Source: Nageia nagi
Lineage: Eukaryota > Plantae > Pinophyta
Direction: 5' to 3'
Assembly (NCBI GenBank): GCA_050084985.1
Contig: JBITNC010000002.1
Coordinates: 38,502,001-38,566,000 of the forward strand
DNA length: 64,000 nucleotides
Shown: piece after piece, positions 1,475 to 57,600 of the stretch
How positions within the stretch are numbered: the stretch's first letter is position 1
Layout of the letters: each line of letters opens with the position of its first letter
Program-made: the position numbers and the translations under genes
The notes under the pieces: model-generated
What the model saw: only the letters and a program-made list of their open reading frames with translations
What the model was told of the DNA's origin: nothing
Databases searched by the model: none

Positions 1475-4400
1475 ATGGAGGGAAGAAGATCTCAAGACCC
1501 CACTTTAGAAAAATTAGATCATGAGGTTAAACAACTCCAAGATTACCTTGGTGGAGTTAACTTAAAATTTTCTTTCCAAGAGATAAATGATAAATTCACT
1601 AAATTTATAGAGAAGCTTATAATATTGGGCACTAAATATGATTCTATGAAATTGAATCTATTGTAAGTACAAAAAATAACTCATACAACTATGCAATAAT
1701 CATATATGCAACAACCATCCTCATTCCAAACTACATCAGGTATAATTTTTCAATAATATTCAAGGCCTAATACTCAATTGCAAGCATAACAAATGCATAT
1801 GGTAAGCCCCCAAGCCTTCATACTTCCATGATAAAATAAGCTAGATTTACCCAATTTTAATGAAGAGGATCCAATGAGCTAGATTTATAGACTAGAATAA
1901 TACTTTACACTAAATCAAATTCCTAAGGTTCAAAAGGTCAATGTCGCTTCTTTCCATTTGGAGCATGAGACCATTTAGTAGTACCAATGGTTTGAAAAAA
2001 CTAGTGGGAATCCTTATTGAAGAGAGTTTACAAAATATTTTTTGGTTAGGTTTTGCCCAAGTGATTTTGAGGATTTCACAAGAGATCTTACAAAACTTTG
2101 GCAAACATCAATGATGATGGAATATCAAACATAATTTGAAAAGCTTCCAAATTGCATATAGGGATTATATGAATCATTTTTTAGGAGTTGCTTCATTAGT
2201 GGGTTAAAGAAAGATATTAGGGTAGAATTCAAAATATTTAATCCTAGCACTATGATACAGACTATTAGATTGGCCAAATTGGTAGAACACAAATTCAATG
2301 CCCAATGTTGATAAGGGAAGAAACCATTTAACAAAACTCAAGTTTACCAAGTTGCTCCTAAACCTATCTATTCATTTCAAATTAAGTGACTTAGTCAAGA
2401 GGAAATAAATGAGTGTAGAGCGAAGGGACTTTGCTATAATTATGATGAAAATTATGCAACTGGCCATCGATGTACTACATAGAGTTTGTATTTGCTTAAT
2501 GATGATATTTCTAATGATTCAAAGGATGGAACTATTGTTAAGGAAGAAGCTAATGAGATTGAAATAATTGAAGAAGAAGTTATTATTTCTTGTAATGCTC
2601 TTACATGAATTTTGATACCCTAAATAATGAAGGTTTGTGGATATTTCAAAAAGCATTCTCTCATCATTTTACTTAACTTGGGAAGTACACATAATTTTGT
2701 TGATCCTGGTGTATCTAAACAAACTAATTATTTTATATATATCCTCAAAATAATTTTGAAGTAATTATTGTAAATGGAGGTATAATTTCTTGCAAGGGGA
2801 AATACTGCAATATTAAGCTCAACATGGGTGATTATCACATACAAAGTGACATGTATATACTTCCTTTGGGAGGGTGTGATGTGCTTGTAAGAGTTTAATG
2901 GTTAAGAACATTAGGACCTATACTAAGGGACTTCCTTGAACTATGGATGAAATTCACTATTGCAAGCTATACATATCAACTCAATGGACTACATGTTGGT
3001 CAATCTTAGATTATAAGTTCTCATTGAATAGAGAAGCTGATTCAAAAAGGAAAAAAAGGGATGGTAGGAAAACTATTTCTAATACAATCAGCTGCATAGG
3101 AGGGAGGTGGATTAGTAGAGTTGTAAAAATTATTTGCACATCATGAGAAGGTTTTTGAAGAACCAAATGGATTACCCCCCAACCACCCTCAAGACCATTC
3201 TATACAACTAATCCTTGAAGGTCAACCACCTAACATTTAGCCCTATTGCTACCCATGTTTGTAGAAAGATGAAATTAAAAAGTTAGTACATGAGATGCTG
3301 GAAGTAGGTATTTTTAGGCCAAGTGTAGTCCTTACTCTTAGCTTGTCATATTAGTCCAAAAAAAGGATGTATCTTGGTGGTTGTGCATAAATTTTTAGGC
3401 TCTCAACAAAGTAATTGTGAAAGATAAATTCCCTATTTCCATCATTCATGAACTATTGGATGAGCTACATGGAGCTAAATATTTTTTGAAACTAGATCTA
3501 TAATCAAGATATCATCAGATTCAAATATGTGAAGAGGATATTCCAAAAATAACTTTTTAGATGCATGAGGGTCATTACAAATTTTTAGTAATGCATTCGA
3601 CCTTACTAGTGCCCCTTCAACATTCTAGATTTTGATGAATCAAGTATTTCATCCTTATCTTCATAAATTTATTTTGTTTTTCTTTGATGATATTTTGATC
3701 TATAGCAAGACATGGGAGGATCATTTGGAACACTTAGATTAAACTTTGTAATTACTTCAAGAGCATCAATTATATGCAAAGAAATCCAAGTATTCCTTTA
3801 TGATGCATGAGATTGAATACTTGGGGCATGTCATCTCTTAGTACGAAGTCAAGGTAGATCCATATAAAATTGGAAACATGCATGATTAGCCTATTCCAAA
3901 ATTACTCAAGGGATTACAAGGAGTTTTGAGTATAATAGGTTATTATAAAAAAAATGTAAATAATTATGGGATGATTACAGCTCCACTCACAACATTCTAA
4001 AATGAGATCCCTTTAATTGGTCACCAACTGCTAAATAATCTTTCTCTAAATTGAAGGAGGCAATATGCTCTATTCTTATTTTAGCCATGCCAAATTTTTC
4101 TAAAATATTTATCATTAAGAGTGATACTTTTGGAGTAGTATTGGATGCAATTTTGATGCAAGAAAGAAGACCCTTGGCTTTGAGTAGCAAGGTATTATCA
4201 GGCCAAAATTTAGCTAGATCTATCTATGAAAAGGAGATGTTAGCAATAATTCATGCAATTCAAAAATAGAGATCCTACCTCATTGGGTGACATTTCATTA
4301 TTTGCATAGATCACCATAATATGAAGTATTTCATGGAATAATAAATTTTGAAAATTGAATAACAAAAGTGGGTGACCAAACTATTAGGATATGAATACAA

Positions 4401-13439: not shown

Positions 13440-14504
13440 GGGTGAGTGCAAGAAGTTGGGTCCACTTTAAGGCAAAAAAGTGTAAGTATTTTTCATGATT
13501 TTCAAGTTTGGGAATGATTTATCTCAAAATTTGAAGCACTTACACATGGAATCATGAAAAAGCTCAATAAGGTGAAAATGTAGTGCTCAAAGTCTAGTTT
13601 TTAAATATATAATTTATTCCAATACCCAGGTCATAGAATTTAAAATTTGATAGGATGAACAAAAACCATTTGTAAAAAAAAACCATTTTTGGACCATACC
13701 ATGTACGTGTTTGTCACACATAATTTGACTAAAATCAATGTATTTTTGAAAATACTTTTAGGCATAGATACCTAATACATTAAAGCTTATCTTGGATATT
13801 TTTCCATAATTTTTCATCAATATTTTATTTTTATTAAATTTGTATCGAACATGTTTGTGGTTTCGAAAAGAGCTCATGTTCGTCACACATAGTTTGACCT
13901 AAACTTAATCTTTTTTTTTAAAATTTTTTTTTATCTTATAGAGAATTATCTAAAACTTGTCCTTATATAATTTTATTTTTATAACTCTTAAAAAAAGTTA
14001 TTAAGAAAAAATGATACCATCATATTTCAAGTATATAAATCACTTTTACTAAAAAATAATTGAAAAATATAAAATCTTATCCAATTGTAAAAATAATTAT
14101 ATATTTGAAATCTATGCTCTTTTATCTGAAATAAGTTTTGATTTCATGAACAAATTTTGCCAAAACTCCATCAAACATATGCTTGAAGTTGAGATTTTCC
14201 ATTAACATTACCATTAACACATAATTGCATGTCCAAGGCTAAGTATTGGCTCACCAAGCCTTTTTTGAGCCTAAAATTGAGGCAAAATCAAAGATTCAAA
14301 TATCAAGATCTCGATATTTAAAGCTAAAAAAATACATGTATTTTAGTTTTAAATATCAAGATTTCAATTTAAAAAATTAGGATTTTGATATTTATTAGGA
14401 TCTCAAACCTAAATCAGGATCCCAATTTTTCCAACATTGAATTTTAACTTCATTGATTTTCCTCCACTTCCCTTTTGAGTGGACTCATATTCTTGCTTTC
14501 ACCC
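13440..14504. mobile_element. Non-autonomous Sola2-like TIR element (1065 bp) inserted into the PPR pseudogene
   Basis: Imperfect TIRs GGGTGAGTGCAAGAAGTTGGGTCCACTT / revcomp GGGTGAAAGCAAGAATATGAGTCCACTC. Near-TSD TTAT/TTAC. Flanks rejoin into a PPR motif. About 750 bp is homologous (inverted) to 47560-48283. Confidence 0.85.
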
Positions 14505-34911: not shown

Positions 34912-37900
34912 ATATAGGCTTTTGCACTGTCTGAACACAGAATTTTAAGAACCTTTGAATTGTGGAGATTCAAACCTGTAGATTTCATTATTAATGTATT
35001 GACCTTTGATTGCTTGAACACACGGAATTTTGAGAACCTTTGAATATGAAGATTCAAATTTGTAGGTTTTCTTTTTAATTAACGAATTGATTTTGTATTA
35101 ATCAGTGAAATGTTTGAAGGTTTTCACAAATTTTTACAATTGAAGTATCAATATACACAAAATATTCACACTATATTAATTTATTGCATTATGTCATCAA
35201 GTAATTGAAAAGATACTACAACTACTGTCCATCTAAAAAACAAAGAAAAATCAAACCATCCTAACCCATTGCTGGTATTCTCAAACTGATGCACTCTAGT
35301 CAACATTGATGATAACCATGTGACAGAAGTTGCATAGTTAAAAAACCAAGTTGACCCTTATGAGGTAACAAAATCAGTAATTATGCGGCATAAAAAAATC
35401 TTAAAAAGAATTTAGATGTGAATCATGTGATATTTATGAATAATAGAAATTTATTTGAATAATCGGACAATAACCTATAAAAGTTTTGAATATTTTGATT
35501 TTTGATGGTAATTAATCGTCAATTATTTGGAATAAAGGTTGGTTTTTTTTTTAAAAGATGGGTTGAGTTTATAAGGTTTGTACATCAAGAGATGTTAACA
35601 ATTTAATCTTTTCTTTTCAAGGAAGTTGATAGTTTGATCATCCTTCAATCTGATCTTTGAAATAATATTTTATTTACATTTTACACTTAAAAGATTACTT
35701 AAATTTGTATTACTCAACTTTATCTTAAAAATTAAAAATTTACTTTATTATTATTCTCTAGAAATAACAAATCATTTTAATTGCATAATTTTTGTATTTA
35801 AAAAAGATAAAAATTAAATTTAAGTATCTACATTTTGCAACCTTTAGATATGTGGTAGATGAACTTAAGACCATTTTTCCAAAGTAACAAGAGAAAAATA
35901 TTGTTAGTCTCAATGATATTTCCCTAATTATGGTAACATGATGGTGATAGAGAAATGAACTTATTATGACTTATTTTTGCCTTTCTTCTTATATTTTTAG
36001 CTTAAAATTACTTATAAAACTAAGTTGATGCTTAAGATTTAAAATAAAATAACTTAAAAGTTAAATAATCATATGAGTTCGAAGGTATTCAATATGGTTG
36101 GTACCTTTTATAGGTGACATTAAGGACATTATCACTTCTTGATAGAGATTGCATACCACCTATTTTACATACACATGATAAAACACATATAAAAATTAAT
36201 ATAGAAAAATGTAAGATAAATATGAAATTAATGATAAAATACAACATTATAAGGAAACATGTATATGGTAAGAAATGATGTTTAACATCTACCCAAAGGA
36301 TTTATGACAACCTAATAACATCACCATGAATTTTCCATTGTAGGTCTCTTGATTCCCTAAAGATGAAAAGCAAAATGATACATAATGGATCTCCTATGAA
36401 GGGTTCTTCACTAACCCTAAGGACAAATAAGATAATGGTAGCACCAAAACAAAGTGCATAAAGATCATCATAAATTATTCTCAAATGTTATTCAACTCCT
36501 AAAAGCATGATAATTTCAAGAAGATGATTTACTAGCATGATGTTATCATGGGATTCAAGGATCCTCTAATACCAAAGTACCAGAAGGAAAATCATAAAGA
36601 TATAATTAAGTGCACATAGATGATTCCAAAATGTTAATCAACTCCTAGAATTGTGATATTCTTAAGAATATGATTAGTAACATAAGAACATCATGGAATT
36701 CCCATTAGGGATATTTTAATGCCCTAAAGATTCAAATAGGTAAAGAATAATAAAATATGAAAATAAAAATTATAGTATAAATATTGAATAATTTCATCAG
36801 GAGATAATATAAAATAATATTTTTGTGGATACTAAAAAAATTCCATTAATTTTGTTTTTGCATGTATAATGATTTCTATTAAAGTATTTACCCATTAGTG
36901 TAAATATTTCAAGGGTTTTCTTATAAATATTTCATCAATATTGGAGGTTGACTATTGTATATTTTTATGTCTTGTCATTTTATGATTTTCAGTTGTAATG
37001 TATGGAGACTAATGTGTTTTAGAAGATGACACTAATAATATTATAGCTGATCGATGATTGTCTTATTCTTGATGACCCTTGTATTTTCCCAACCATTGGT
37101 TTCTCCCTTATGTGTCCTCAATCTGCAAAGTTGAAGACATGGTGAAGATTGAAAAGTTTAGTATGCATTTGTATTTATAGTAAGTAAAGGTGTATTGCAT
37201 GCATTAACTTCCTATCTTGATAGAGTTATAAGAGAATGACATTTGAGCAATAACACCTAGCCTAGATGTGTCTCTTACCTCATGATCAATTCAACAAAAT
37301 GTAGTCATAGGAAATGTAATAATCATATGGATAGAAGAGTAGGGAAAAATCATATAAAGAATCATAGATATACAACCTTCACTTCCCATAGTTAAAGATA
37401 TTGTAAAGAGTAAAAAGTAGAGCATGTATCTTTATTTGTAGTAAATAAAGTTGTATTAAATTCTTTAACTTCCCATATTAATAGAGTTGTGAGAGAATTA
37501 TATTTGAGCAAGGGTACATGCAATAAGTTGAGTCCCACTTTAGAGGAAGTTATGGGAATTAGTTTTTTATTAGAATGGGGCAAGGATCCTAGGTCCCCCT
37601 TTGGGATCTTGGGGGTCAGGATCCTAGGCCCTAACACTATAATTTGTAAACAAAGGTTTGTGACTTCATTTCCATGTCATTTCTATCAATATGAGAAGAA
37701 CAGTGAAGGAAATAGTGAAGACTTAGGATCTCAGACCTTGTAGTTAATTTTTGACCTCCCACCCTTTATCGTAGCTATCTGCATTATTCTCCCTTCATGG
37801 TATGCTCTGGAAACTCTCCTTTGGATTTTTTTGGGTAAAAAATGCCTTTTTTTTATTTGAAGTAAGGGTTTCAAGTTTTGGGATAAAAATGATTATTATA

Positions 37901-38879
37901 TTTTGAATAAAAAAGGGTTTTTTATGTTAAAAATGAATTTTTTAGTTTTCATGAATTCTTTATTCAAGACAATCAAAATAATCTTGTTGATTTTGTTAAA
38001 TAGTCATTCAAATAATTAATTGATTTATACTTTATTATATGAATAAAAATTGCTTACCTTTGCACTCTTCTTAGTTGTCTTTAAAACATGCTCAAATGTT
38101 CTTATTTGATATATTCTTTCTTCTATGAGAAATAATAATTTAAAACATGCTCATTACTTTACAAATATAATGATGATAAACTTTATAGTTTTAATGATGT
38201 GTAAGTTAATCATGTTGAGAGCTTGGGATTATGTTGATTGATTTTGTGTATGATCATTCAAAAATGATTTGTGTATGTGTGTGCCATAGCCAAAAGAAAT
38301 GATATTGTATAACCAATCAAGTTATACTAATAAGAACACCCAACCAATAGAATCTCCAAACAATGCCTAATATAATTAAGTATGTTGACCTTACAAAGTG
38401 GTTGTAAAATACCTAATTTAATATATTATTGATGAACCTAATAGGAAACTCAAGATCACATTGAGAAATTTGGGCTCAAATACTAGAATGTTGGATGCAT
38501 GTTCTAGGCCTATGTGAAAGAATGTTGGGTGTTCTAGCTTGCATAGTTGTTTCAAATTATGGTTTCAAATAAAAATACTCTGATGAGTGAACTTCTTGCC
38601 TATATCTTATTACACAAACTTCATCAAAATGAATAATCTCCAATGCTATAATATTATGGTTAGTCCATACACTCTATACCTTTGAGTATTCATGGAATCA
38701 TCCATGTACCTTAATACTTTGCTAAGAAGTTATAAATTACCTCATGTTCTTGCTTGTCTAACATAGTCTCACCATATTACAAATGGAATTTTATGGAAAA
38801 TTTTAACTACCTTTAAATATATTTAAGGGAATTTATTAATCTATCATATATATGAGGGCATCAAAAAAGTCACTAGCAT

Positions 38880-39500
38880 ACAATGATAGTTATAAGTTTT
38901 ACCCATGACCTACATATCTTTAAGGGTGGCTGATATCAACCTTTGGTAGAGGTGGCATGATTAGTTTACTAAAAGACACCTTAGACTCTCATTTTCCAAA
39001 TTAGGAAGTAGATCAAACCTAGATTAGGTTGTTTAGAGGTTATCTTATAGCTTGAGAGTTACCTTCTTAGTTTTTTTAATATTTACATGACCATAGGATG
39101 ATTATCCAATATATTTTTCATTTTTTACCTGGTTAGATTTATCTAGATTCCTCCTACCATCTATCTTGTTTATGGATTCAACATGGTCTTAATATACCTA
39201 TAATAATGTTAAGATTCTTCCAATGTGATTTCCAATTGGAGAGCATGAGGCCTAGATTTTATGAAGAATAAATTAGGGATCATTTCATATCCTAATTATT
39301 TTTGAACACTTCCTCATCCTTTATTATTATTATATGTATGGCTCTTATAGTCAAACTAGTAGTAGGGAGATAATAGAAATCTCAAGTACCTAGATATGAC
39401 TATGATGTCCTCTCCATTTATAGAAGTTATTCTTGAAGCTAGCATCTTTGAACATTCTCTTATATTTTATTTTTCATTAAAACTTATATTCCTTTTTCTC
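38880..39500 (+). mobile_element. Possible decayed L1-type endonuclease fragment nested in the DNA transposon
   Basis: Weak motifs in the expected order: GRGGMISLLK, FFNIY, GFNMV, FEHSLI. Confidence 0.25.
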
Positions 39501-40431
39501 ATCAATGAACACCTTTTAGTTCTTTTTAAATTTAAATACTATATTTCTACATGTCATGTCCTAAATTATTTCACTTTATATCTAATGAATTTGATTTATT
39601 CCTTGCCCAAATAGCTCCAATGGATGAATTCACTAGTGGTGTATTAAACCATATAATGAACAACCAAATTCCTTGAAAAATAATAGGTAAATTTATGTTT
39701 CCATGTCTTGAAGTAGGTGTAATTTATCTCTTAATTAGCTTGAATTGGTGCATGCCACTAGATAACTTCAAGAAGCAACCTTGAAGCTTGATCCTTAAAA
39801 ATTAACTTGCAACCTCTAGGTTTTTTTAAAAGTCTAGTTCCTTTCTAAAAATTTCAAAATCCTATTGAACACATGAATAACTAGTTTAGATGGACATGTT
39901 GATAAACATACCTTTGATTAATATTGCAATATAAGGAATTCAAAATAACATCTAATAGTTAGTCCATGCAAAAGGTAAACACAACTCTCATAAGAATGAT
40001 ATTAGCTTTACAATTCTTGTATGGGAAAAAAAATCATTTGACATACATGGGACTTAAGAAAAAACTATGATTATATTTATTTATGTGAAATATAGGTGGC
40101 CTAAAATTAGGACACAAATTCCTTCTAGGAGGTACTTGTATCTAAAGATTTGTTATGCTATAAAATTATTATTATTTCATGTGAAATTTAAGCTTTGTTT
40201 CATTATTACATGGATGTTCAAAAATATTTTATTATTATCTTAATTGAGTGTTAATTAAATAAGTTTCATTTTTAATTTTAATTTAATTTTGTTTAGATTT
40301 GAACTAAACTGTTAGGACTTATATTTTAATTTATGTAGTTATTTATTCTTTTAATTGTTAATTTATGGAGGTGATCTTTTGTACATCCATGGATCCATAA
40401 ATTAAATGAGATTCTAAAATTTAAATCACTC

Positions 40432-40432
<1 letters not shown>

Positions 40433-40488
<56 letters not shown>
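40433..40488. repeat. (TG)28 microsatellite
   Basis: Perfect dinucleotide run. Confidence 0.98.
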
Positions 40489-40489
<1 letters not shown>

Positions 40490-43400
40490 ACGCACATGCA
40501 TGCACTCTTATAGGTTGATAAGACTTTTACAATGGATATGTTTATTGATACCAATGTTACTCATGAGGTGCATGGCTCACATGTACAACCTACAATGGTT
40601 GAACCTCCAACCTCTCAATAAGAAATTATGGTAATTTATAATGCATTTTTGTAGATAGATATGGTTATAAATATAATGATTAAGTTTCTAATTTTAAGTT
40701 TCTTTTTATCTCTTGTAGACCTTGGTTGAAAATACTTTTTCTTGCTAGGTGCATGGCTCATTAGAGTAACATATAGTGGTTAAGCCTTTAGTATCTCAAC
40801 ATGATATGGTAATTATAATGTATTTTAATGTTGTGTGTGTGTGTGTGGTCATTTATAATGATTAAGTTTCTAAATTAAAGTTTATTTTTTTTGAACAATG
40901 TGAGATATTTTTACTTGATACATCACATGGAATGAAGAGGAAGATTAATTATGACCCTTCACCCTTCACCTAGTGAGGACTAGTTTGATAGATTGTTAAG
41001 TGGATGAATTTATAAATGTACAATTTTTATTTATGAGTACATGGACTAGATGGATTGCTTAGCTATATTGTGACTAGATGGATTATATATCTTATTATTT
41101 TGATACATGTACATGTTTATGGATGCCTAGTTTGGATTAAAACTGATATACATGTAACTATTTTGATACGCATGTTATATATGTATGTTGATGGATCATG
41201 CCTAATTCTAGAATAGGTGTTTAATTTATGGATGACAACAATTTATGTTTATATTTTATTTTTTTAAATACAAATCATATTAAAAAAACATAAAAAGGTT
41301 AAAATTAACAAACTAACATTAAAAAGGTTAAAAAAATATACTAAAATCTTATGTTTTATATAATTAACAAATTAACAAAATTGCATGTTTGGTAAAAAAA
41401 GTCAAATGCATTGCATTCATTTTAAAACAAGATATTGGATAAATGATCTATATATTGCATGTAAAGGTAATATAGTTGATATGTTTATCTAAAATTTATA
41501 TGATAAATTATATTTTGAATACATAAAGCTAATCATAATAAATTTCAAAATGTTATCCATGATGAAAGGGTGATCTAAAAGGTAATTATTCATAAAGTTA
41601 TGCTAAAAGTTAAGAATTCTAAAGATGAATATGAAAATAAAAATCATCATGCTTAACCTTAAATAGTTTTTCCTACTATATTGTATCCTAAAACACTTAG
41701 TATTCTAGTACTGAGCATGTCATATGATAAAGAATGAGAGCATAACATCTTGTAACCTTTTCCCCCTCCATGATATCAAAACGTTTGTGTGACATTAAGT
41801 GTAAGATCGATGATGGTGGAGGTGATCAAATTCCTCCAGCCCATTATGATCCCTAAAAATCAAATAGAAAATGTAATTACTTTTATGCTTAATTATTAAT
41901 GATTTAGCATTAAATTCCTTTTTACTAGTTAGCTTACCTAAATCCTTAAGGATTTCAAAATAGATTGATTATCACAACTTTCTATGTCTTTGTAAAAGAA
42001 GGTCTTACATTTCTCATGTCATTCCTTAAATTTATCATAGGTCTATGAGGAGGAGTTGTTATAATATTTTATGTCTCAAATTGTATGGATAAAATCTATT
42101 AAATAATATCTCATCAAACTAGTTGGTTGGTGTGTTAGCTATTATGGGTAATGGGTTATCACTCATATCTAATATTGTAATGTGCATCCAAGATCATACT
42201 AGAAGAATCTACTATAAGTGTATCATACACATTATCACTCTCATAAAATGAGATCAATTAAATCATACTGCTATAATATTTTCCTCCTAAATTGAATTAG
42301 AAAGGAGGCACTCATACTACAAAATATGAGTCTTAACATCCAATCATGTAGGGGTAATTTGGTCACCATCTAATGCAAACATACCAATGACATATAACAA
42401 CTCCATATGTGGAGTTCAAACAAAACAAATTTTGCATCATCAAATGAAAAAATGAGAATATCTTCTCCACTATAGTATGCGTCAATGTATTCCTAATTTA
42501 AACTATTGTATACAATAACTAGACTTAACTTGTTCATTACTTGGTTAATAACTTAACAACTAGTATTCACTTGATATATTTATTATTATTTTTATTTAGT
42601 TAATATAATGGTAGGTAAATATATTTACAATTAGTGATAACCTCAATAATGTTCTTGAAGGTCAACATAACACACCTACTTAAAATATGGCCTTGATAAT
42701 TAAGATAGATAATTCTATTTAGCATGAAAAGATTTCTATAACAAGTTTTATCATATGAGATATGATAGATGTTTAAGACTCCACCAAATGGGAATATCTC
42801 TATAGCATATTAAATCACCTTTATCCAAGAATGATTAGCTAATTTAAAATTTCATTAAGGACATACAAGAATAAATAATAAGTAAATTACACTCTATATT
42901 AGAGAAGCCAAAACTATTTAATATGACATGTACAAGTCTTTTCTAACTTCAAATAAAACCATAATAGGATTTATGCAACGTATGAAATAAATCTCTTAAG
43001 TTTGAAGGGGAGAGGGAAGAGGAGAAGGGGAGGGGAGTGAAAGGGGAGAAGGGTAAGGGAATAAGGGGAGGGAGATAACTCATGGAAGAAGATTAATTTT
43101 AGATCCTAAATCTTAAAATTCATACAATAAATCCATCCCTTGATCATTTATCAAGGACATAAGTCTCCACTAAATAATCTCAATCATAATATTCACACCC
43201 ATTTGCTAAGGTAAAATATTACTCTTTTCTATATAAGGATCTAATATAATATTATAAATACTAATCCAACTAATTACTATAAATTATACATGATCTTACA
43301 AATATCATCAACATCCTCCTCAATACAAGTGAGAGGCTAAGCTATATCCAAAGAGCTTAAAATCTATCAACTACTACTAATGAATGTGATAAAAAATCTA

Positions 43401-44264
43401 ATTACATACATTATGAATACAAATATAATAACTAAAATGTATATCCTTAAATGAAATATCATCACAATATATCTCATAAATCGATAACATGTCCAAATGC
43501 CAAATTTCTATAAAAAACTACCTTCAAAACTTTAGAGATTCTCCATACTCATAAATGGATCATATTTAAGTGCATAATCTATCATAAAGGTACTATCAAT
43601 ACTCTTAAGTAACAAATGAAAATGCATATACCTAATTAAAATCAATTCAAGATAAAGAGATAGTGCACTGAACCATGCATAAATAATCTACAAAATGAAT
43701 CTTACCAGTTAATCCATCCTTAAAACTAACATTCACATATTTCTTAATGCATGAAGAGGAATTCATATGTAATATGTAGGAACCCAAGTTTGTACTAGCA
43801 TCTTCTCTCTTATCCTTGTGATCTAAATTCATATTACTAAAAAAACCATATGAGTACTTATTATAATGTAAGGGGTTCATGGGAAGCAAAAGGGGAGAAG
43901 GGTTAGGGGAGAAGGGGGAGGGAGGGAGAAGAGGAAGGGGAAGGGAAGAAGGGTAGGGGGAGAGAAAGGAGAGAAGGAGAAGCAAAAAAGGGTAGGGATC
44001 AACATATAGACTAACACAACAATCCTCAAATGTACTTGACATGATGTCCCTAAGAATAACAAAAATGCACAATTAGGTACAAATCTAAATATTTATAGGT
44101 GGTGTCAAGAGACACCATTTAATGATAGTTTAATGATATTTGTGTGAGTCCTCTTCATACATATCTCAACAAAATACAAGGGAATATGAGTGAAACATAT
44201 TATAACATAATTGTATTTAATTTTATAATTAAAATAATTCACTATTTAACATTTCCTTTATTTT

Positions 44265-47207
44265 TCAATCCATTGCACCATCTACATCCTCTCTTCTTTC
44301 TAATGCATCTATAATTATCTCATGTTCATCCAATGAAATATTCCACAACACTTTATTAGAAGGCCTCCCTTTATATCTAGATAGTTTTATGTTTATTTAC
44401 AATACTAAATGCAACTAATGTATAATATTATTATGTGTTCCATAATCTTCAAATGTAGGAAAACCATTCTTTTTTTTAAGATATTTTCATATCCATGTGC
44501 CAAAAACCACCATAGAACCTATTGTATAATGAAATCCATCATTATCAAAATTCAGAAAAATGATAAATAGAAAGATATATAGAGACTTTAATAAGATCTT
44601 GAGAAATATATACAAAACTTATTGGATAAAGAAATCCATCACCATCATGTCAAGGTGGATTTAACTTATGTTTTTTCTCAACACATCAAGCTAGCCAATA
44701 CCCTATTTCCTCTTCATTCCCTTCAAGTGCAACAACAACATACATATACATTTGAATATAAATAAATTGAATTAAATTACCTTCTTGTACAAGGTATGAA
44801 ATATGATCATAGTATTTTGATGTAAACAGTTCATCTTCAATTGTTATTTCTTGTTGATCATGGGCTTATGTAGATTTCAAAGATATTTGTTTCCATTCTT
44901 GAACCCCTTCTATATTTATACATGCTTTTGATTCACCTTTAACACAAGAATCACAAAAACATTCAAGATCCCTTATCCATATAGTCCAAGTTCTTTCTTT
45001 TGAGCCTCTAAATGAATGCCACTTTATTGATCTATTGATTATATCACAATCAAGATGAATCAAAATATTATCTTTTTTAACTAAACAAAAGTATCATTGA
45101 ATTATAGAATTCTCACTTTATCTTGTAAATAATATTGTACTACACCATTCCATAATATCACATGCATCTTTAAATACTTGCATCTCCAAATTTTAGTTGC
45201 TCTCTAGCAAGAGCTCTTTGAACAAATGCACTTGATCCATCATGTTCTCCTTTACCATGTTTTTCTTAAATAAAACTCCATATATGTTCGATATTTTTTC
45301 TTTATGAACCTAACTTAGCCATTAAAACACTTATGAATTTTTAAACTATCCCATACAATTATTTGATCGTATGAAATGTTTGGCCATATATATTCCTCTT
45401 TTATCTAAATTATTGTAAATAGCTTAAAACAATATTGGAAAATTTTTTATGAGTGTAATCACTTATCACTCACATAGAAATGGCACTCCCTAAAAAAAAT
45501 TATGTTATCTTTAGTACTATCATTTGCATGTTTACATACAATATGGAAAAAATGGAAACTTGAACTAAATTATAGTATTGAGACTAGATTTATTCTTGTG
45601 GTCTAAGAGTATAATTTTCAATAAATTCAACCATTGATAATATAGTTCTAACCAAAAATGTGTTTCTACATTGAAAAAATTGACTATCAAGCCATCGATT
45701 ATTTTGGGAGTGTTTCACATATTTTGGTAGATACTTAGTCTTAAAATCATCCATGAATGTATACACTTTAATGCTTTTAAGGATCAAGTCAATATGCTTT
45801 CCAATTTTTCCATCCTTCAAATCATACTCAATATTCTTGAATATTCTAACATCCACATCTTGTTTTCCAAATTCATACAAACTAATTTCATGCATAGAAT
45901 CTCCTAATAATGAAAATTTCCCACATTTATGACATTGTCTAGAAATACATGATTTTGAATAAAATGATTTCTCATGAGGAGGTGGACAAAGAAAACTTGC
46001 TATAAACTCCTTGATAGTTTCAGGTGGTATATGAATACCACATTCTTGCATTACATTATTAGTATGTAAATTATAATTTATATTTTGAAAGAATCATAAT
46101 AATATCCAAATTCCATATGATATTTGCAACAACATGTTAATTTTTTCTTGCTAATTATAATTTACCAATGTTTGCATTTCTCAAATGATCTTTAACTTAT
46201 GCTAATATTAAATGATTGTAACACTCCAGAAATAGTTGATACGATTCAATTTGAGTCATATATAGAAGGTGTTTTGGATGATATTCATGATATTTTGACC
46301 CAAATTTCAATTTTGAAATATCTTTAGTGTGTGATGATACCCTTGTTCTATCATGCCAAAAGGTTTCAATTAAAGACTTGATATTGCTAGTCAATTTCAT
46401 GTCAAACCTTGGGAGTCTACTGCTATAACTTCAATATTGGTTGGTTGGATCACTTTTAATTACCTTCTCTTTATGAGATTTTGCAAATTTTTATGAATCA
46501 TATTGAACAATTCACCAATATTTCTTTTGTTTGATATTGTTTTACTTACTATAGCAATTGTTATAGCTCATCATGTTGCATTCTTGTCTTTAGATCTACT
46601 CTTTCTCTTAATAAAACTAATTGCACTAGCAACAATAGACACAACTTCTTTTAGGGGTTCATATTCCTTGTTTTATTTCATATTAATGCCTAAATTTTTC
46701 ATTATTTCTCTAATTTTTGACATTCTTATTTATTGAAACATGATTTGACATTGAACTCATTGCTCTTTATTTTTGAAAATTGATCATGTATATCAATTGT
46801 AATTGTTCTTATTTGTCTTTAAGATAGAAGCTTATCATTGGGAAAATTATGTAAGATATTACTTTCAATTTTTGAAAAAATATTATCATTTACTTTCAAA
46901 GGTGGATCTAAATATATACCCAATGGATTGGTATTGACAGGTGGATATGAAGCTTCTACAATTGTAGTCTCCTCTTCCATATGTGCATCATACACATTCA
47001 TTTCTTGAATGTTGTCCTCCTCAATATTCTCATGAATTTTCTCCTCTTAATCATTGCCTTAGAATTCAATGCTTCATCATTTCTCAATTGGTTCAAAAGT
47101 TTTCTTCTCTCTCTTTTTCATTTTTCATCCTTCTCTCTAATTTCTTTTTCTTATTTAGGTGTTAATTTCCTCTCATATTTCCTTTATTGACATTTTTTTG
47201 ATCCCAT
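44265..47207 (-). pseudogene. Sola2-like DDD transposase pseudogene
   Basis: Motifs in order: TCCCKYH (about 46125), LCPPP...CISRQCHKC, MVEFIENY..PQE*I*SQYY, HFYVSD, IRSNNCMG*FKN, HGKGEHDG (45238-45259), WHSF...RDLECFCDSC. Stops and frameshifts throughout. Confidence 0.8.
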
Positions 47208-48544
47208 GACCTCCTTTAAAAAATGTATTTACTTTAAAATTATTGTAATCACAAAAAATGAATAGAAAATCATAAAAATGAAGAGAAAATTACAAAAAAG
47301 GTCACACGAATCTGTACAATATTGATACACATTAATAATAAATGAAAAATAGTTTTATATGTATTTTTTAATATATTAGGGTTGGATCCTAAGCATCGAC
47401 ATCTCGATGGTGAGTATCTTGTCCCTAAATTCAAATTTTAAACCCACTATTTTTCCTTGGATCTAGGCTCAAAATTATGTTCGATGATCCAACCCTTGGC
47501 TTTGAACCTACAACTTCAAGGTCATAATAATGACAATGGAGTTTACCAACTTTAGGCATGCATTTGATGATATTTTTCAAAGAATTGTTTCATAAAATTT
47601 TGAAGGATTATAGATGAGAGACTGCAGATTTCAAATATGGTTTTTTTTACAATTGGTTGTATTTTAATATAATTTTCAATGAAAGAGGGTCCATAAACTT
47701 TGAAAATTAGGGTTTTATATTTGTTTAATAACTTTTTATTTTTTTGGAATTATGAAAAAACATGTGTGCACAATCTACATACAATTTTCCATAGCTTAAA
47801 AAAAATAAAAATGATAAGTTTAGGTCAAATTATGCATGAGGGATACGAATAATTTTTGAAACAATAATTAGGGCAAATAAAAAATTAATAAAAAAATATT
47901 AATGACAAAATTACAAAAAATACCTTGCATAATATTTAGTGTCTTAGGTATCTTTACCCAAAAGGATTTAACAAAATATTGTAATATAGGTCTAATTATG
48001 CTTGAAGGACATGATGGGAGTGTAGTTCTCAAACTATATTTTTTAAACACTAGGTTTTATTCATGTCTATCACAAATTTATTTCTATGACCTAGGTATTG
48101 GAATAAATTACATATTTGAAAACTAGTCTTTCAATACTACATTTTTACCTAAGTGATATTTTTCAAGATTCAAACTCCAAGTACTTCAAATTTTGATATC
48201 AATTGTGAAAAAACTTGAAAATCAAGGAAAACACTTCCACTTTTTTTTCCAAAAGTATGACTAATCTTCTTGCACACTTACCCACAAAAATACCTAGATT
48301 GACCATGTATCCTACCTAATGATTGTTTCAACAAAATGCACTCTTAATAAATGCAACAATTGTATGGAAAAAGGAGGGAAAAATCATAAAGGATAATCAA
48401 TATGTAATCTTCATTATCTACACACCAACATTCCTTCTCTACATCAACATGATGATTGTTTGATAAAGTGCCTCATTAACATGTTACTTGCAAATCACCA
48501 ACATTCAAGGTTTATGTTAAAATTCATAATTGTAAATACCATGC

Positions 48545-49300
48545 ATGATACAAATGTATATAAAACTAGTGGTTATGGCATTATGTATCCATTAACAACA
48601 TCTTCAAGAAGTCACCATGAGTAAATCTTATTACTATATATTTCATAAAGGCCAACATAAAATAGACATGTAGGTTTATAGTGAGTCTACATTGAGATAA
48701 TAAAGGACCATTTGTTGATATACATTTTTTTTATTGTATTAAAACCTTAGGGTATAAGGATCACCTACCTAATTATATTTTGGAACTATCTATCCAAATG
48801 GAATAAATAAAAAAAATAACAAATCATATCCATCTATAGCTATTATGGAGATAGCATGTAATAAGGCTTACATAATAGAAATTGGGATAAATACCTTAAC
48901 AAGATACATATGTATGCAAAACTAGTGGTTGTGGCATTATGTATCCATTAAAAACATCTTCAAGAAGTCACCATGAGTAAATCTTCTTACTATATATTTC
49001 ATAAAGGCTAACATAAATTAGACATGTAGGTTTATAGTAAGTCTACATTAAGATAATAAAGGACCATTTATTAATATACATTTTTTTTATTATATTAAAA
49101 AATTGGGGTACAAGGATTAGCTACCTACTAATATTTTGAAAGTATTTATCTAGAACATTGATAGCTACTATGGAGATAACATGTAAGAAGGCATACATAA
49201 TAGAAATTGGGATAAAATAAAAAAACTAGTAGAACATTGATAGCTACTATGGAGATAACATGTAAGAAGGCATACATAATAGAAATAGGGATAAATCCCC
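48545..49300. repeat. Tandem duplication of about 355 bp, plus a nested duplication of about 80 bp
   Basis: AAAACTAGTGGTT(A/G)TGGCATTATGTATCC at about 48562 and 48917; TAGAACATTGATAGCTACTATGG at about 49151 and 49230. Confidence 0.85.
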
Positions 49301-54600: not shown

Positions 54601-57600
54601 GGTGAGAGGTATGCCACAAGTAGAAGATTATAAAGACTTGTGTGAGGGATGTGCACTTGGAAAGCAAGCAAGGATAAAGTTTCCAAAGGAAGAAGCATGT
54701 AGAGCCAAACATCCTCTCTAATTGGTCCATACCAACATTTGTGGGTCTATGCAAACTTAATGTTTTGGTAAATCCTCTTACGTTATCACTTTAATTGATG
54801 ATTTTAGTAGAATATATTGGGCTTACTTCATTAAGAGCAAGGATGAAGCATTTGACTATTTTAAGGAGTTTAAAATTTTTATTGAGAAGAAAAGTGGGTA
54901 TAATGTGAAGTGTTTGAGAAGTGATAGAGGAGGAGAGTATTGTAGAAATGAATTCTTTTAGTATTGCAAAGAGAATGGAATCAGGAGACATATAACCTCT
55001 CCCTACACACCACAAAAAAATGGTGTAGCAAAAAGGAAAAATAGGATATTGGTTGAGATGGCTATAAGCATGATGAAAAGCAAGAAACTATCCAATATTT
55101 ATTGGGATTAAGTAGTAAAAGTAGTTGTGTACATTTTGAACAGGTCTCCTATAAGAATTTTGGATAAAATTATCCCCTATAAACCTTAGTTTGAGGGAAA
55201 ACCAAATTTGCAACACTTGAGATTGTTTGGTTATCTTGCATATGTGCATGTAAATGATAAAAAGAGGAGAAAGTTGGATGCTATATTTGAATCTTTTATG
55301 CTAATAGGATATTATGAACATTCAAAAACTTATAAATTATATAATCCTAAGAGTCATAAGATAATTATTTCTAGAGACACTATTTTTTATCAAGGGAGAG
55401 AGTATAGTAATAACAAATTACAACAAAAATTATTTGTATATGAGAGTTGGAAGGAGAGAATACCATAAAAAATGCATCCCAACCATGTTGTGACTCAAAA
55501 ACATAAAGGGTAGCCATCAAGTTTGAGTGTTCCAAGCTCACTAAGAACCTTTAGCTCCACCATAACACAAACAATTGTGAGTACACCAAGTTCACCTAAT
55601 GTAAGGATGATGAATTAAGGTAACAAAGGTAAGATATGATTGAAGGATCAACCAACTATTCAAATCAAAGATGGTAATACCATGAGGAGAATTACAAGGA
55701 TCCAAACCCAAGAAATGCAAAATATAGTCACAAGGCTAAAGAACATTCAATTCCATAGAGATGAAGATAGTGGAGATCCTAAAGGAGAAATGATAATCTA
55801 TGCACTTTACTCCTCTATTTCAAATGTAACTATTGTTGAGCCATATTATTATGAAGAAGCTTGTTCTAATGTTGTTTATATTCAAGATATGAAAGAGGAG
55901 ATTGATGCTATTGAGAGGAATAATACTTGGGAATTTTGTGAGTTTCCCAAAGGTAAAAAGGTTGTTGGTTCCAAGTGGGTGTATAAAATAAAATGTAAGA
56001 GTCATGGGAGCATTGAAAGGTATAAAGCAAGACTAGCGATAAAAGGATTCACATAGCAATATGGTATGGATTTTGAGAAGACATTTGCACCTATTTCAAG
56101 ACATGAAAAATAATATTAGTAAGCTCCAAGATCTTGATACACTATAATTGATAGATTCTTCAAGAATGTGGGATTTTAAATAAGTGTAAGTGAGCCTAAT
56201 TTGTATTTTAAGAAAGATAAATATGATATTTTAATTTTTTATTTGTATCTAGATGATTTGATCTTCATGGGAAGAAATAACAAGATGAATGAAAATTTCA
56301 AAACTCAAATGATGGTTGAGTTTGAAATGAAATATCTTGTTTTGATGAGCTACTTCCTTAGCTTAGAGGTGCATAAAAAAAAGAAGAGATTTTTGTGTCC
56401 TAATCCAAATATGCACATGATATGTTGAATAAGTTCAAAATGGATACTTGCGCACCTGTTGTAACACCTACAACCTATGGAGAACATCTTTGCAAAGAAG
56501 ATGGAGCACTAAAAGTAAACAAGAAAGACTATAGGAGTATTGTTGGAAGTATCATGTTTCTAATATACATAAGGCCAGATTTGTAATGTAATGTTTCATT
56601 GGTTGCAAGGTATATGAGTGATCCATTCATTATCTATCTCTAGGTAGTAAAGAAAATCCTTATATATGCGAAAGAGATAATCAATTTTAGATTACATTAT
56701 ACATGTAGTTCTAAGTTTAAACTCACAGATTTTAGTGATAATATTTAGGGCAACAATTTGGATGATAGAAAGAACATAAGTGGAAATTTCTTCTCTCTTG
56801 GATCAAGTATGATATTATGGAGCTCAAGAAAATAATCCATTGTAGCTCTTTCTATTACTGATGTTGAATATGTAACTATGACAAATTATTCAACAAAAGC
56901 TTTATGGTTGAGAAAGCTATTGAAGGAGATTGGAGATAAGAAAAAAATGTAAATGCCATTTTTTATGATAACTAAGGTACCATTAAGTTAATACAAAAGT
57001 ATGTCTATCATTTTAGAATAAAATACTTTGATTTAAAGATATTTCATTTGAGATTTGGTGGAGAAGGGGATAGTAAATTGAGGTATTATCTAACACAATA
57101 TCAAGTAGCTGATATATTCACTAAATCTATGTAAAAATCTCAATTTATGTTATTAAGAGACTTAATTTTTTATCCTCTTATTATCAAAGGGGAGTATGAA
57201 GAGTTTCAAGATGTAACTAAACCTTAATTGTACTTAAAACTCCCATTTCTATGCTTACTATTTTAACTTTCATGTATAGATTGTGAAATGGTATATTATA
57301 GACTGATTGTGTAATCGAACAACTAGTTAAACCACCAAAATTGACCTACTAATTAATTAATTGGCCTATTAATTGGTACTATGTAGTGCATTTTTTAAAA
57401 AGTTATTTTGTCTTAATTTTTGCCTCATTTTTATCTTTGTAAAGGAATATGAAACGAATAGCCAAGCTCACCCATGAACTATGAATTGTATTTATTTATT
57501 GTTATAAGTTGTAATGACTGTTGGAGTGTGTTCTCAAACTTTAATGCAAGTTTTATAGTGTTCTACAAATTTTGGTTTTGTGTATAACCATTGATGAATG

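Follow-up and report, generated by a model that had tools for sequence, protein, structure and literature searches.

The stretch of Nageia nagi DNA analyzed here (contig JBITNC010000002.1, positions 38,502,001 to 38,566,000; 64,000 bp, hereafter the window) contains a single insertion of 10,772 bp at window positions 37512 to 48283, which begins with GGG and ends with CCC. We read this insertion, referred to below as the large copy, as a dead, autonomous-type DNA transposon of the cut-and-paste kind, placed in the Sola2 group of the Sola superfamily and in a family present in very high abundance in the host and its relatives, and we put the probability of this reading at about 0.85. The assignment to Sola2 is made because the ends are of the type GRG...CYC, 4 bp were gained at the target, the motifs of the transposase follow the published Sola2 order and spacing, and no Pfam transposase domain was detected.

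An uninterrupted host repeat delimits the insertion

The large copy opens with GGGTACATGC at 37512 and closes with ...CACTTACCC at 48283. When its terminal inverted repeats (TIRs) were aligned end to end, 26 of 38 columns matched, with two 2-nt gaps; the repeats are thus imperfect and about 30 bp long. The 5' TIR (37512 to 37541, plus strand) agrees with the family consensus, GGGTGAGTGCAAGAAGTTGGGTCCACTTTA, at 21 of 30 positions and can be aligned, starting at its first G, to the corresponding ends of three short relatives, whereas the flanks are unrelated. The 3' TIR (48254 to 48283, minus strand), placed by end alignments, has diverged from the family consensus. The element is flanked by GCAA on the left (37508 to 37511) and ACAA on the right (48284 to 48287), which we take as the two copies of the target-site duplication (TSD); the right copy differs from GCAA by one G-to-A change, located at what would be a CpG with the last C of the element.

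The host unit hit by the insertion is one unit of a repeat of approximately 261 bp, and an uninterrupted paralogue of this unit, the "empty site," is located at 37126 to 37339, as identified by repeat comparison and by alignment of the joined flanks. This paralogue holds GCAA once (37247 to 37250). The left flank (37387 to 37511) is 78% identical to positions 37126 to 37250 of the empty site, and the right flank (48285 to 48376) is 71% identical to positions 37248 to 37339. Upon removal of GGG...CCC together with exactly 4 bp, the joined flanks aligned to 37126 to 37339 without gaps, with 160 of 214 positions identical (75%). Removal of GGG...CCC plus 0, 2, 3, 5, 6, or 8 bp required gaps every time, the 8-bp removal at a cost of four gap columns. 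The whole element, oriented on the minus strand after its transposase gene, is therefore delimited by the empty-site paralogue, the gapless alignment, and the TIRs. A preliminary description of this DNA had derived the same boundaries from an in-window empty site at about 37231 to 37301; we confirm the boundaries, as well as the GGG/CCC ends, the imperfect TIRs of about 30 bp, and the GCAA/ACAA flanks that it reported, and find the empty site to be longer. A clean empty site within the window thereby fixes the limits of a member of a family that is often left unclassified by automated pipelines.

The host DNA near the insertion (37126 to 37511, 48284 to 48376, and 48544 to 49150) is itself repetitive, with units of approximately 261 bp at 75 to 78% identity. 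Further to the right, in 48544 to 49150, a 251-nt repeat is present in two copies 356 bp apart with 90% identity.

The transposase gene of the large copy is decayed

A decayed transposase gene was located on the minus strand at 44265 to 47207 by collinear tblastn matches of intact relatives and an alignment of the gene (A1). It was searched as separate stop-free minus-strand pieces, and no joined or repaired reading was used. Homology was confirmed for 46487 to 44671; the sequence upstream of 46487 would encode a K/E-rich N-terminal region. Residue numbers given below refer to the A2/P0130 family, where A2 is an alignment of 27 transposase relatives and P0130 is an intact relative. Invariant in A2 were D215 (in DFAENY), D272 and H275 (in ISDDxxHD), and D306 and Q311 (in WSDGCxxQFK), and H342 to G345 and D348 (in HGKGxxDG) were near-invariant; the third catalytic residue is thus D and not E.

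The following motifs were recognized in the large copy, all on the minus strand. The zinc-binding-type motif CCCKYH (46117 to 46134) aligns with CCCKHH, CCCRYH, and CLCRYH of relatives, and a second cysteine cluster, CISRQCHKCG (45920 to 45949), aligns with the invariant C112, C117, C120, and G121 of A2. The first catalytic motif (DFxENY, with D215, N219, and Y220 invariant in A2) is present as EFIENY (45611 to 45628), which has E in place of the D. The ISDDxxHD motif, of which A2 conserves D272, H275, and D276, has decayed to YVSDK and a stop (45459 to 45476). The second catalytic motif (SDGCxxQFK) was identified by motif reading and spacing as SNNCMG followed by a stop (45346 to 45366), with D changed to N and Q to a stop codon; its distance to HGKG is 40 amino acids (aa) here compared to 37 in the relative P0102, and in other copies its S is preceded by W (window positions 45367 and 45369). 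The third catalytic motif, HGKGEHDG (45236 to 45259), retains its D and is identical to the A2 consensus. Toward the C terminus, CFCDSC (44944 to 44961) corresponds to a CxCxxC motif (tblastn with P0102 residues 808 to 843, E = 7.8e-4; P0130 has CFCFSC at residue 448), and remnants of a C-terminal β-rich domain, for which the model of an intact relative suggests a likeness to BAH domains, were found at 44265 to 44865 (tblastn with P0123 residues 434 to 549). Every motif listed in the preliminary description, i.e., CCCxxH, (D>E)FIENY, S(D>N)NC, HGKGEHDG, and CxCxxC, was thus recovered, and the decayed ISDD-type motif is an addition to them.

Two of the three catalytic aspartates are replaced in the large copy (E for D215 and N for D306), and the close relative P0002 retains the first of them. 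In addition, the gene changes reading frame several times and has at least four in-frame stops, located at 45590 to 45592, 45584 to 45586, 45459 to 45461, and Q311. Given these substitutions, stops, and frame changes, the gene is dead and, as read from its sequence, the large copy can no longer make transposase.

Intact relatives have a predicted RNase H-like core with a DDD triad

A 167-aa piece of the gene, at 45593 to 46093, retrieved 99 relatives at E ≤ 0.001 among 1.84 billion representative proteins, and a search seeded with a liverwort relative yielded about 25 intact proteins of 570 to 660 aa. The intact relatives, typically of about 630 aa, are collinear with the window from approximately 46490 to 44670. 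With 99 relatives, and with intact relatives collinear along the gene, the homology is not due to chance. The intact proteins of about 630 aa come from liverworts, a charophyte, cnidarians, and molluscs, and the named relatives belong to Calypogeia and Riccia (liverworts), Klebsormidium (a charophyte), a coral, and a nucleariid. No Pfam transposase domain was found in eight stop-free pieces of the gene or in sets of 8, 27, and 6 relatives. A sequence search of the PDB with an intact relative found nothing.

An AlphaFold model of P0130 (mean predicted local distance difference test score [pLDDT] of 85, predicted template modeling score [pTM] of 0.84) displayed the order β1-β2-β3-α-β4-α-β5-α of an RNase H-like fold. 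In this model, D215 is in β1, D306 directly follows β4, and D348 is at the start of the helix after β5. Foldseek returned weak matches with this model, every one of them within the RNase H-like superfamily. With an exhaustive structural aligner, residues 198 to 402 of P0130 matched retroviral integrase cores (Z = 10.4, root mean square deviation [rmsd] of 3.3 Å over 153 residues), and the core matched Mos1 and Metnase with Z of 9.2 to 9.7. Taken over retroviral integrase, Mos1, and Sleeping Beauty cores, the values were Z of 9.2 to 10.4 and rmsd of about 3.0 to 3.4 Å over 141 to 170 residues; the acidic residues of P0130 occupied the canonical positions of these cores, at a sequence identity of about 10%. 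The modeled likeness to integrase and Mos1 is one of common fold and not of membership of those families. On this model, the transposase family is predicted to carry a DDD catalytic triad on an RNase H-like core.

Residues 503 to 622 of the P0130 model matched BAH domains (DIM2, Arabidopsis EBS, and MTA1) with Z of about 6.1 to 6.2 over 77 to 87 residues. The C-terminal β-rich domain may accordingly be described as BAH-like in the model, a likeness that we treat as a lead only. A literature search on reader domains found reports of Chromo and PHD domains fused to transposon proteins and none of BAH. In the ESM Atlas, P0130 matched cnidarian and mollusc clusters and a streptophyte cluster named DUF7869; hmmscan did not confirm the latter name, which we rejected. 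Scores for the 167-aa piece were below 0.9 and uninformative.

Some relatives carried additional domains. The long, animal-type proteins P0093 (residues 891 to 1020) and P0096 (residues 841 to 985), both encoded in European Nucleotide Archive (ENA) assemblies, have a C-terminal OTU cysteine-protease domain (Pfam E values of 2e-11 and 4e-3, respectively). The charophyte relative P0122 (Klebsormidium nitens KFL_005820050, 1,180 aa) is annotated as one protein with leucine-rich repeats, a joining that is either a fusion or a gene-model artifact.

Other copies define the family and its terminal repeats

To survey other copies, contigs of four public plant sequencing runs (four organisms, three studies) were mapped to 43000 to 48700 (5,701 letters) at ≥80% identity. 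Between 3,770 and 17,962 contigs per run mapped to this region. Summed contig depth ranged from hundreds to tens of thousands over 44146 to 48347 and dropped to approximately zero beyond 48347. At 48245, other copies in all four runs depart from the large copy and continue with the consensus GGCCATAAAGTGGACCCAACTTCTTGCACT, which, when reverse-complemented, reads as the first 30-odd bases of a small element at 13440 to 14504 of the window. Since the contigs of the four runs and the small element agree, GGGTGAGTGCAAGAAGTTGGGTCCACTTTA was taken as the consensus TIR of the family, and on this comparison the terminal repeats of the large copy have drifted from it. Parts of the window stretch are also present in air-metagenome runs.

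The small element (1,065 bp, minus strand) is a non-autonomous relative, identified by its TIRs and by blastn comparison, that is inverted with respect to the large copy and flanked by TTAT and TTAC. Its 5' repeat is identical to the family consensus for 30 nt, and over its whole length it is 83% identical to the metagenome locus L007. When metagenome contigs of the Joint Genome Institute (JGI) were scanned with the repeat core, six loci proved genuine, comprising the complete short derivatives L001 (1,258 bp) and L007 (1,053 bp), a long relative (L002), and three element ends. L002 is collinear with window positions 44259 to 48275 and is also decayed. Two candidates were discarded as chance matches: L003, from the terminal-repeat scan, and L008, located in a bacterial metagenome-assembled genome and the sole match from the genome-contig scan with the repeat core. 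The same core found nothing in viral contigs. The alignment of seven 3'-type ends holds as far as ...ACCC and is lost thereafter, and four 5'-type ends align from GGG onward.

The short derivatives of the family span 1.05 to 1.26 kb and retain only the ends; they must therefore borrow their transposase. The terminal ~0.8 kb of the large copy (47449 to 48283) is common to them and is the deepest-covered part of the element, with blastn identities of 68 to 75% to 13446 to 14273, L001, L002, L004, L006, and L007. The consensus terminal repeat and the set of short derivatives can be used for masking the family. Upstream of the long relative in L002, at 287 to 517 on the minus strand, an open reading frame (ORF) shows the decayed pattern of a CCHC-type zinc knuckle and probably represents what is left of a retrotransposon gag gene.

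The element resembles published Sola2 transposons

Sola2 elements, described mainly from animals and protists, are characterized by a 4-bp TSD, GRG...CYC termini, and a DDD triad. In the present family, both window copies, L004, and L006 have GGG...CCC ends, and G-to-A or C-to-T variants are found in L001, L002, L005, and L007. For the dictyostelid Sola2 elements, 4-bp AT-rich duplications and sizes of 10.3 to 15.3 kb have been published (PMC3627910; sizes in Additional file 1), and the ends of the elements DFa-2 and DFa-3 of D. fasciculatum are GAG...CTC (PMC3627910). Additional file 3 of the same paper prints the transposases Sola2_DFa-2, with the motifs DFKEN, HFDVFSDVLNH, WSDGAKHFKS, and YHGKSDVD, and Sola2_PPa-1, with DFKEN, WCDNARHFKS, and YHGKSECD and, in the printed excerpt, no visible ISDD-type motif. 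The motifs of the family consensus occur in the order of those of Sola2_DFa-2 and Sola2_PPa-1, and their intervals, of about 50, 33, and 36 aa, compare with about 42, 40, and 37 aa in Sola2_DFa-2, as read by eye and unscored. Thus, DFxENY, HFxxSDxxxH, WSDGxxxFK, and HGK(G/S)xxD follow one another in the published Sola2 order with near-equal spacing over about 150 residues. The termini, the 4 bp gained, this motif order and spacing, and the lack of a Pfam domain all support the Sola2-like identity proposed in the preliminary description. A literature search for the transposase motif strings gave no match.

Compared to the dictyostelid Sola2 elements (PMC3627910), the likeness extends to the 4-bp duplication, GRG...CYC ends, short imperfect TIRs, a size of 10 to 15 kb, and a DDD transposase with DF(K/A)EN, HFxxxSDxxxH, WSDG(A/C)xxFK, and HGK(S/G)xxD motifs (again by eye and unscored). 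In the plant and animal relatives, unlike the dictyostelid transposases, a further cysteine cluster (CxxxxCxxCG) is present, the first CxxC motif and the first catalytic D are about 100 residues further apart, and a C-terminal CxCxxC is followed by the β-rich domain. Further differences are that the large copy has no Fanzor cargo and that the targets of this family are not strictly AWWT.

The proposed mechanism for live copies is that a transposase of about 630 aa, with N-terminal cysteine clusters, an RNase H-like DDD core, and a C-terminal β-rich domain, would bind the ~30-bp TIRs and excise the element. The ends would then be joined to target DNA cut with a 4-nt stagger, and gap repair would generate the 4-bp duplication.

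Length of the target-site duplication and alternative readings

Several observations weigh against a 10.8-kb Sola2 element with a 4-bp TSD. No flank pair is a perfect 4-bp duplication, each having at least one mismatch, and the two flanks (CCTT/AAAT) of the complete metagenome copy L007 are unrelated. An A follows six of the eight 3' ends, which fits an element ending in ...CCCA with a 3-bp duplication equally with CpG decay. The left 6.7 kb of the large copy (37512 to 44259) has no recognized content and no blastn match to L002. Finally, the link to Sola2 consists of motifs read by eye from a supplement.

The weak point of the case is the length of the duplication. In a common orientation, the flanks of the four complete copies are GCAA/ACAA, GTAA/ATAA, AATG/AATA, and CCTT/AAAT. 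Three of the four pairs match at three of four positions, each mismatch being G versus A, and the chance of at least three of four elements reaching this level is about 0.002 (hand calculation from the base composition of the window). The contig of the remaining copy, L007, was assembled from short metagenome reads across a high-copy repeat and may be chimeric; this copy shows no duplication under either a 4-bp or a 3-bp reading. A TSD starting with G makes a CpG with the last C of the element, and CpG is depleted in the window (0.14 of expectation), so that decay of CCC|G to CCC|A or CCT|G is expected. We prefer a 4-bp duplication with CpG decay, which explains the mismatches of both window copies as well as L005, which ends CCT|G. 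It is unlikely that the TSD is instead 3 bp and the element ends in ...CCCA, in which case the Sola-defining 4-bp rule would fail and the element might belong with a 3-bp group lacking a Pfam model, such as Academ or Zator. If the A after CCC is assigned to the element, the large and small copies do have perfect repeats, CAA and TAA, and the CAA-only match of the large copy gives the same arithmetic at the empty site. On the other hand, the TIRs are symmetrical only as GGG...CCC, and no regular T precedes the 5' GGG (the preceding base is A, A, G, and T in the four copies); L005 and L006, the latter ending CCC|T, lack the A; the L001 pair would still be imperfect as ATG/ATA; and the transposase motifs fit the published Sola2 (PMC3627910). 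A 4-bp duplication is therefore the best reading for the large copy. The 4-bp TSD given in the preliminary description stands insofar as only a 4-bp removal is gapless at the empty site, while the two copies, GCAA and ACAA, share exactly CAA alone. CpG decay at the junction between element and target can shorten apparent TSDs by one base in heavily methylated genomes, and where such decay is strong, transposons should be classified by duplication length with care.

With respect to the superfamily, the lack of a Pfam domain rules out hAT, MULE, CMC, PIF, Tc1/mariner, piggyBac, P, Merlin, Transib, and Ginger. More specifically, CACTA/CMC was rejected on the termini, GGGT...ACCC, and on the lack of a Transposase_21-type or other Pfam transposase domain, and PIF/Harbinger on the flanks GCAA/ACAA, GTAA/ATAA, and AATG/AATA, which are not TWA, and on the lack of a DDE_Tnp_4/Plant_tran domain. 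For hAT and Mutator, the 8-bp removal needs gaps at the empty site, and no hAT dimerization or MULE domain was found. Kolobok has TTAA as its target duplication, and none of eight flanks is TTAA. Academ elements duplicate 3 to 4 bp and encode a DDE transposase, in many cases alongside helicase or XPG partners; compared by description, the third residue here is D and not E and no partner genes were seen, while the length of the duplication does not discriminate. Sola transposases, in turn, have been reported without a Pfam transposase domain (PMC5751038). We consider it very unlikely that a non-Sola superfamily (Academ, Kolobok, Novosib, or an unnamed group) merely resembles Sola2 in short motifs. 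Several superfamilies are without Pfam models (PMC5751038), and the comparison with published Sola transposases is one by eye, but the fit of four motifs to published Sola2 in order and spacing over ~150 residues, the D as third catalytic residue, the non-TTAA flanks, and the GRG...CYC ends with 4 bp gained all speak for Sola2, as does a conifer genome paper giving Sola2 as the main class II superfamily (10.64898/2026.07.23.736688). The idea that a decayed host gene or domesticated transposase lies by chance between repeat-like sequences, and was not mobile, has next to no probability: nothing favors it except that the gene is dead, and it is contradicted by the existence of the empty-site paralogue, by ends conserved across many copies, with short derivatives keeping the ends only, and by the thousands of contigs in the four runs.

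It is quite possible, although we lean against it, that the element was smaller when it transposed, at about 4 to 6 kb, and that later insertions and local duplications inflated it to 10.8 kb. Deep coverage by other copies is limited to about 4.1 kb of the large copy (44146 to 48283), where depth reaches thousands, and is shallow over 43000 to 44145, with tens to hundreds. In three runs, contigs pass directly from 43566 to 44095 and thereby skip a 528-bp segment (43567 to 44094) that contains a GA-rich, telomere-like array at 43881 to 43997, as detected by a tandem-repeat finder. The missing blastn match between 37512 to 44259 and L002, the local repeats inside the element, and a (TG)28 array point in the same direction. 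Against this, no transposable-element proteins, long terminal repeat pairs, or TIR pairs were found in 37512 to 44259, and published Sola2 elements reach 10 to 15 kb (PMC3627910). These published sizes also mean that the large copy is not of unusual size, as had been suggested in the preliminary description. Within the full-length element, the left 6.7 kb, in which no long ORF was found, could be variable family sequence or later insertions. Its interior of about 6 kb (37542 to 43566) has no recognizable gene by ORF, tRNA, and Rfam searches; contigs were mapped over 43000 to 43566 of it, where coverage is shallow. No candidate for a second gene was found among the stop-free segments of 37512 to 44300, and tRNA and Rfam searches of the element, the whole window, and the metagenome loci returned nothing.

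GA-rich, faintly telomere-like arrays, of whose repeat units GGGTTAGGGG and AAGGGTAAGGG are examples, are located at 43004 to 43082 and 43881 to 43997 and in L002 at 2961 to 3218; in both the large copy and L002, they sit just downstream of the transposase gene. The (TG)28 microsatellite, at 40433 to 40488, is perfect, and its surroundings are partly repeated about 400 bp further on (40415 to 40448 versus 40814 to 40847).

Sola elements in plants

Sola is listed among eight superfamilies of plant DNA transposons, with reference to Bao et al. 2009 (PMC9804982, PMC6839031), and is absent from the angiosperms analyzed so far (PMC9804982). In the conifer Cupressus sempervirens, Sola2 is the most abundant class II superfamily (10.64898/2026.07.23.736688), which resembles the present case in the seed-plant host and the very high abundance, the likeness being one of superfamily label and not of sequence. 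The view in the preliminary description that this is a poorly catalogued plant lineage was thus not upheld, Sola having been known in plants since 2009. The large copy is a dead and unremarkable member of a family both known and abundant, and its importance beyond annotation is small: the copy is dead, and the superfamily is known from plants and abundant in at least one conifer. It seems rather improbable that plant-type Sola2 elements differ from those described in having a BAH-like chromatin-reader domain that would steer insertion, together with long autonomous units of 10 to 13 kb with extra content.

Window context

The window as a whole (1 to 64000) has a GC content of 29.5%, with CAG/CTG at 0.28 and CCG/CGG at about 0.1 of expectation, and only three open frames of at least 130 aa. 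This composition is similar to that published for Welwitschia, the GC content of which is 29.07%. Elsewhere in the window, at 55640 to 56056 on the plus strand, an open 138-aa frame encodes a Ty1/copia reverse transcriptase fragment, whose closest relatives, from ENA assemblies, are 62 to 70% identical.

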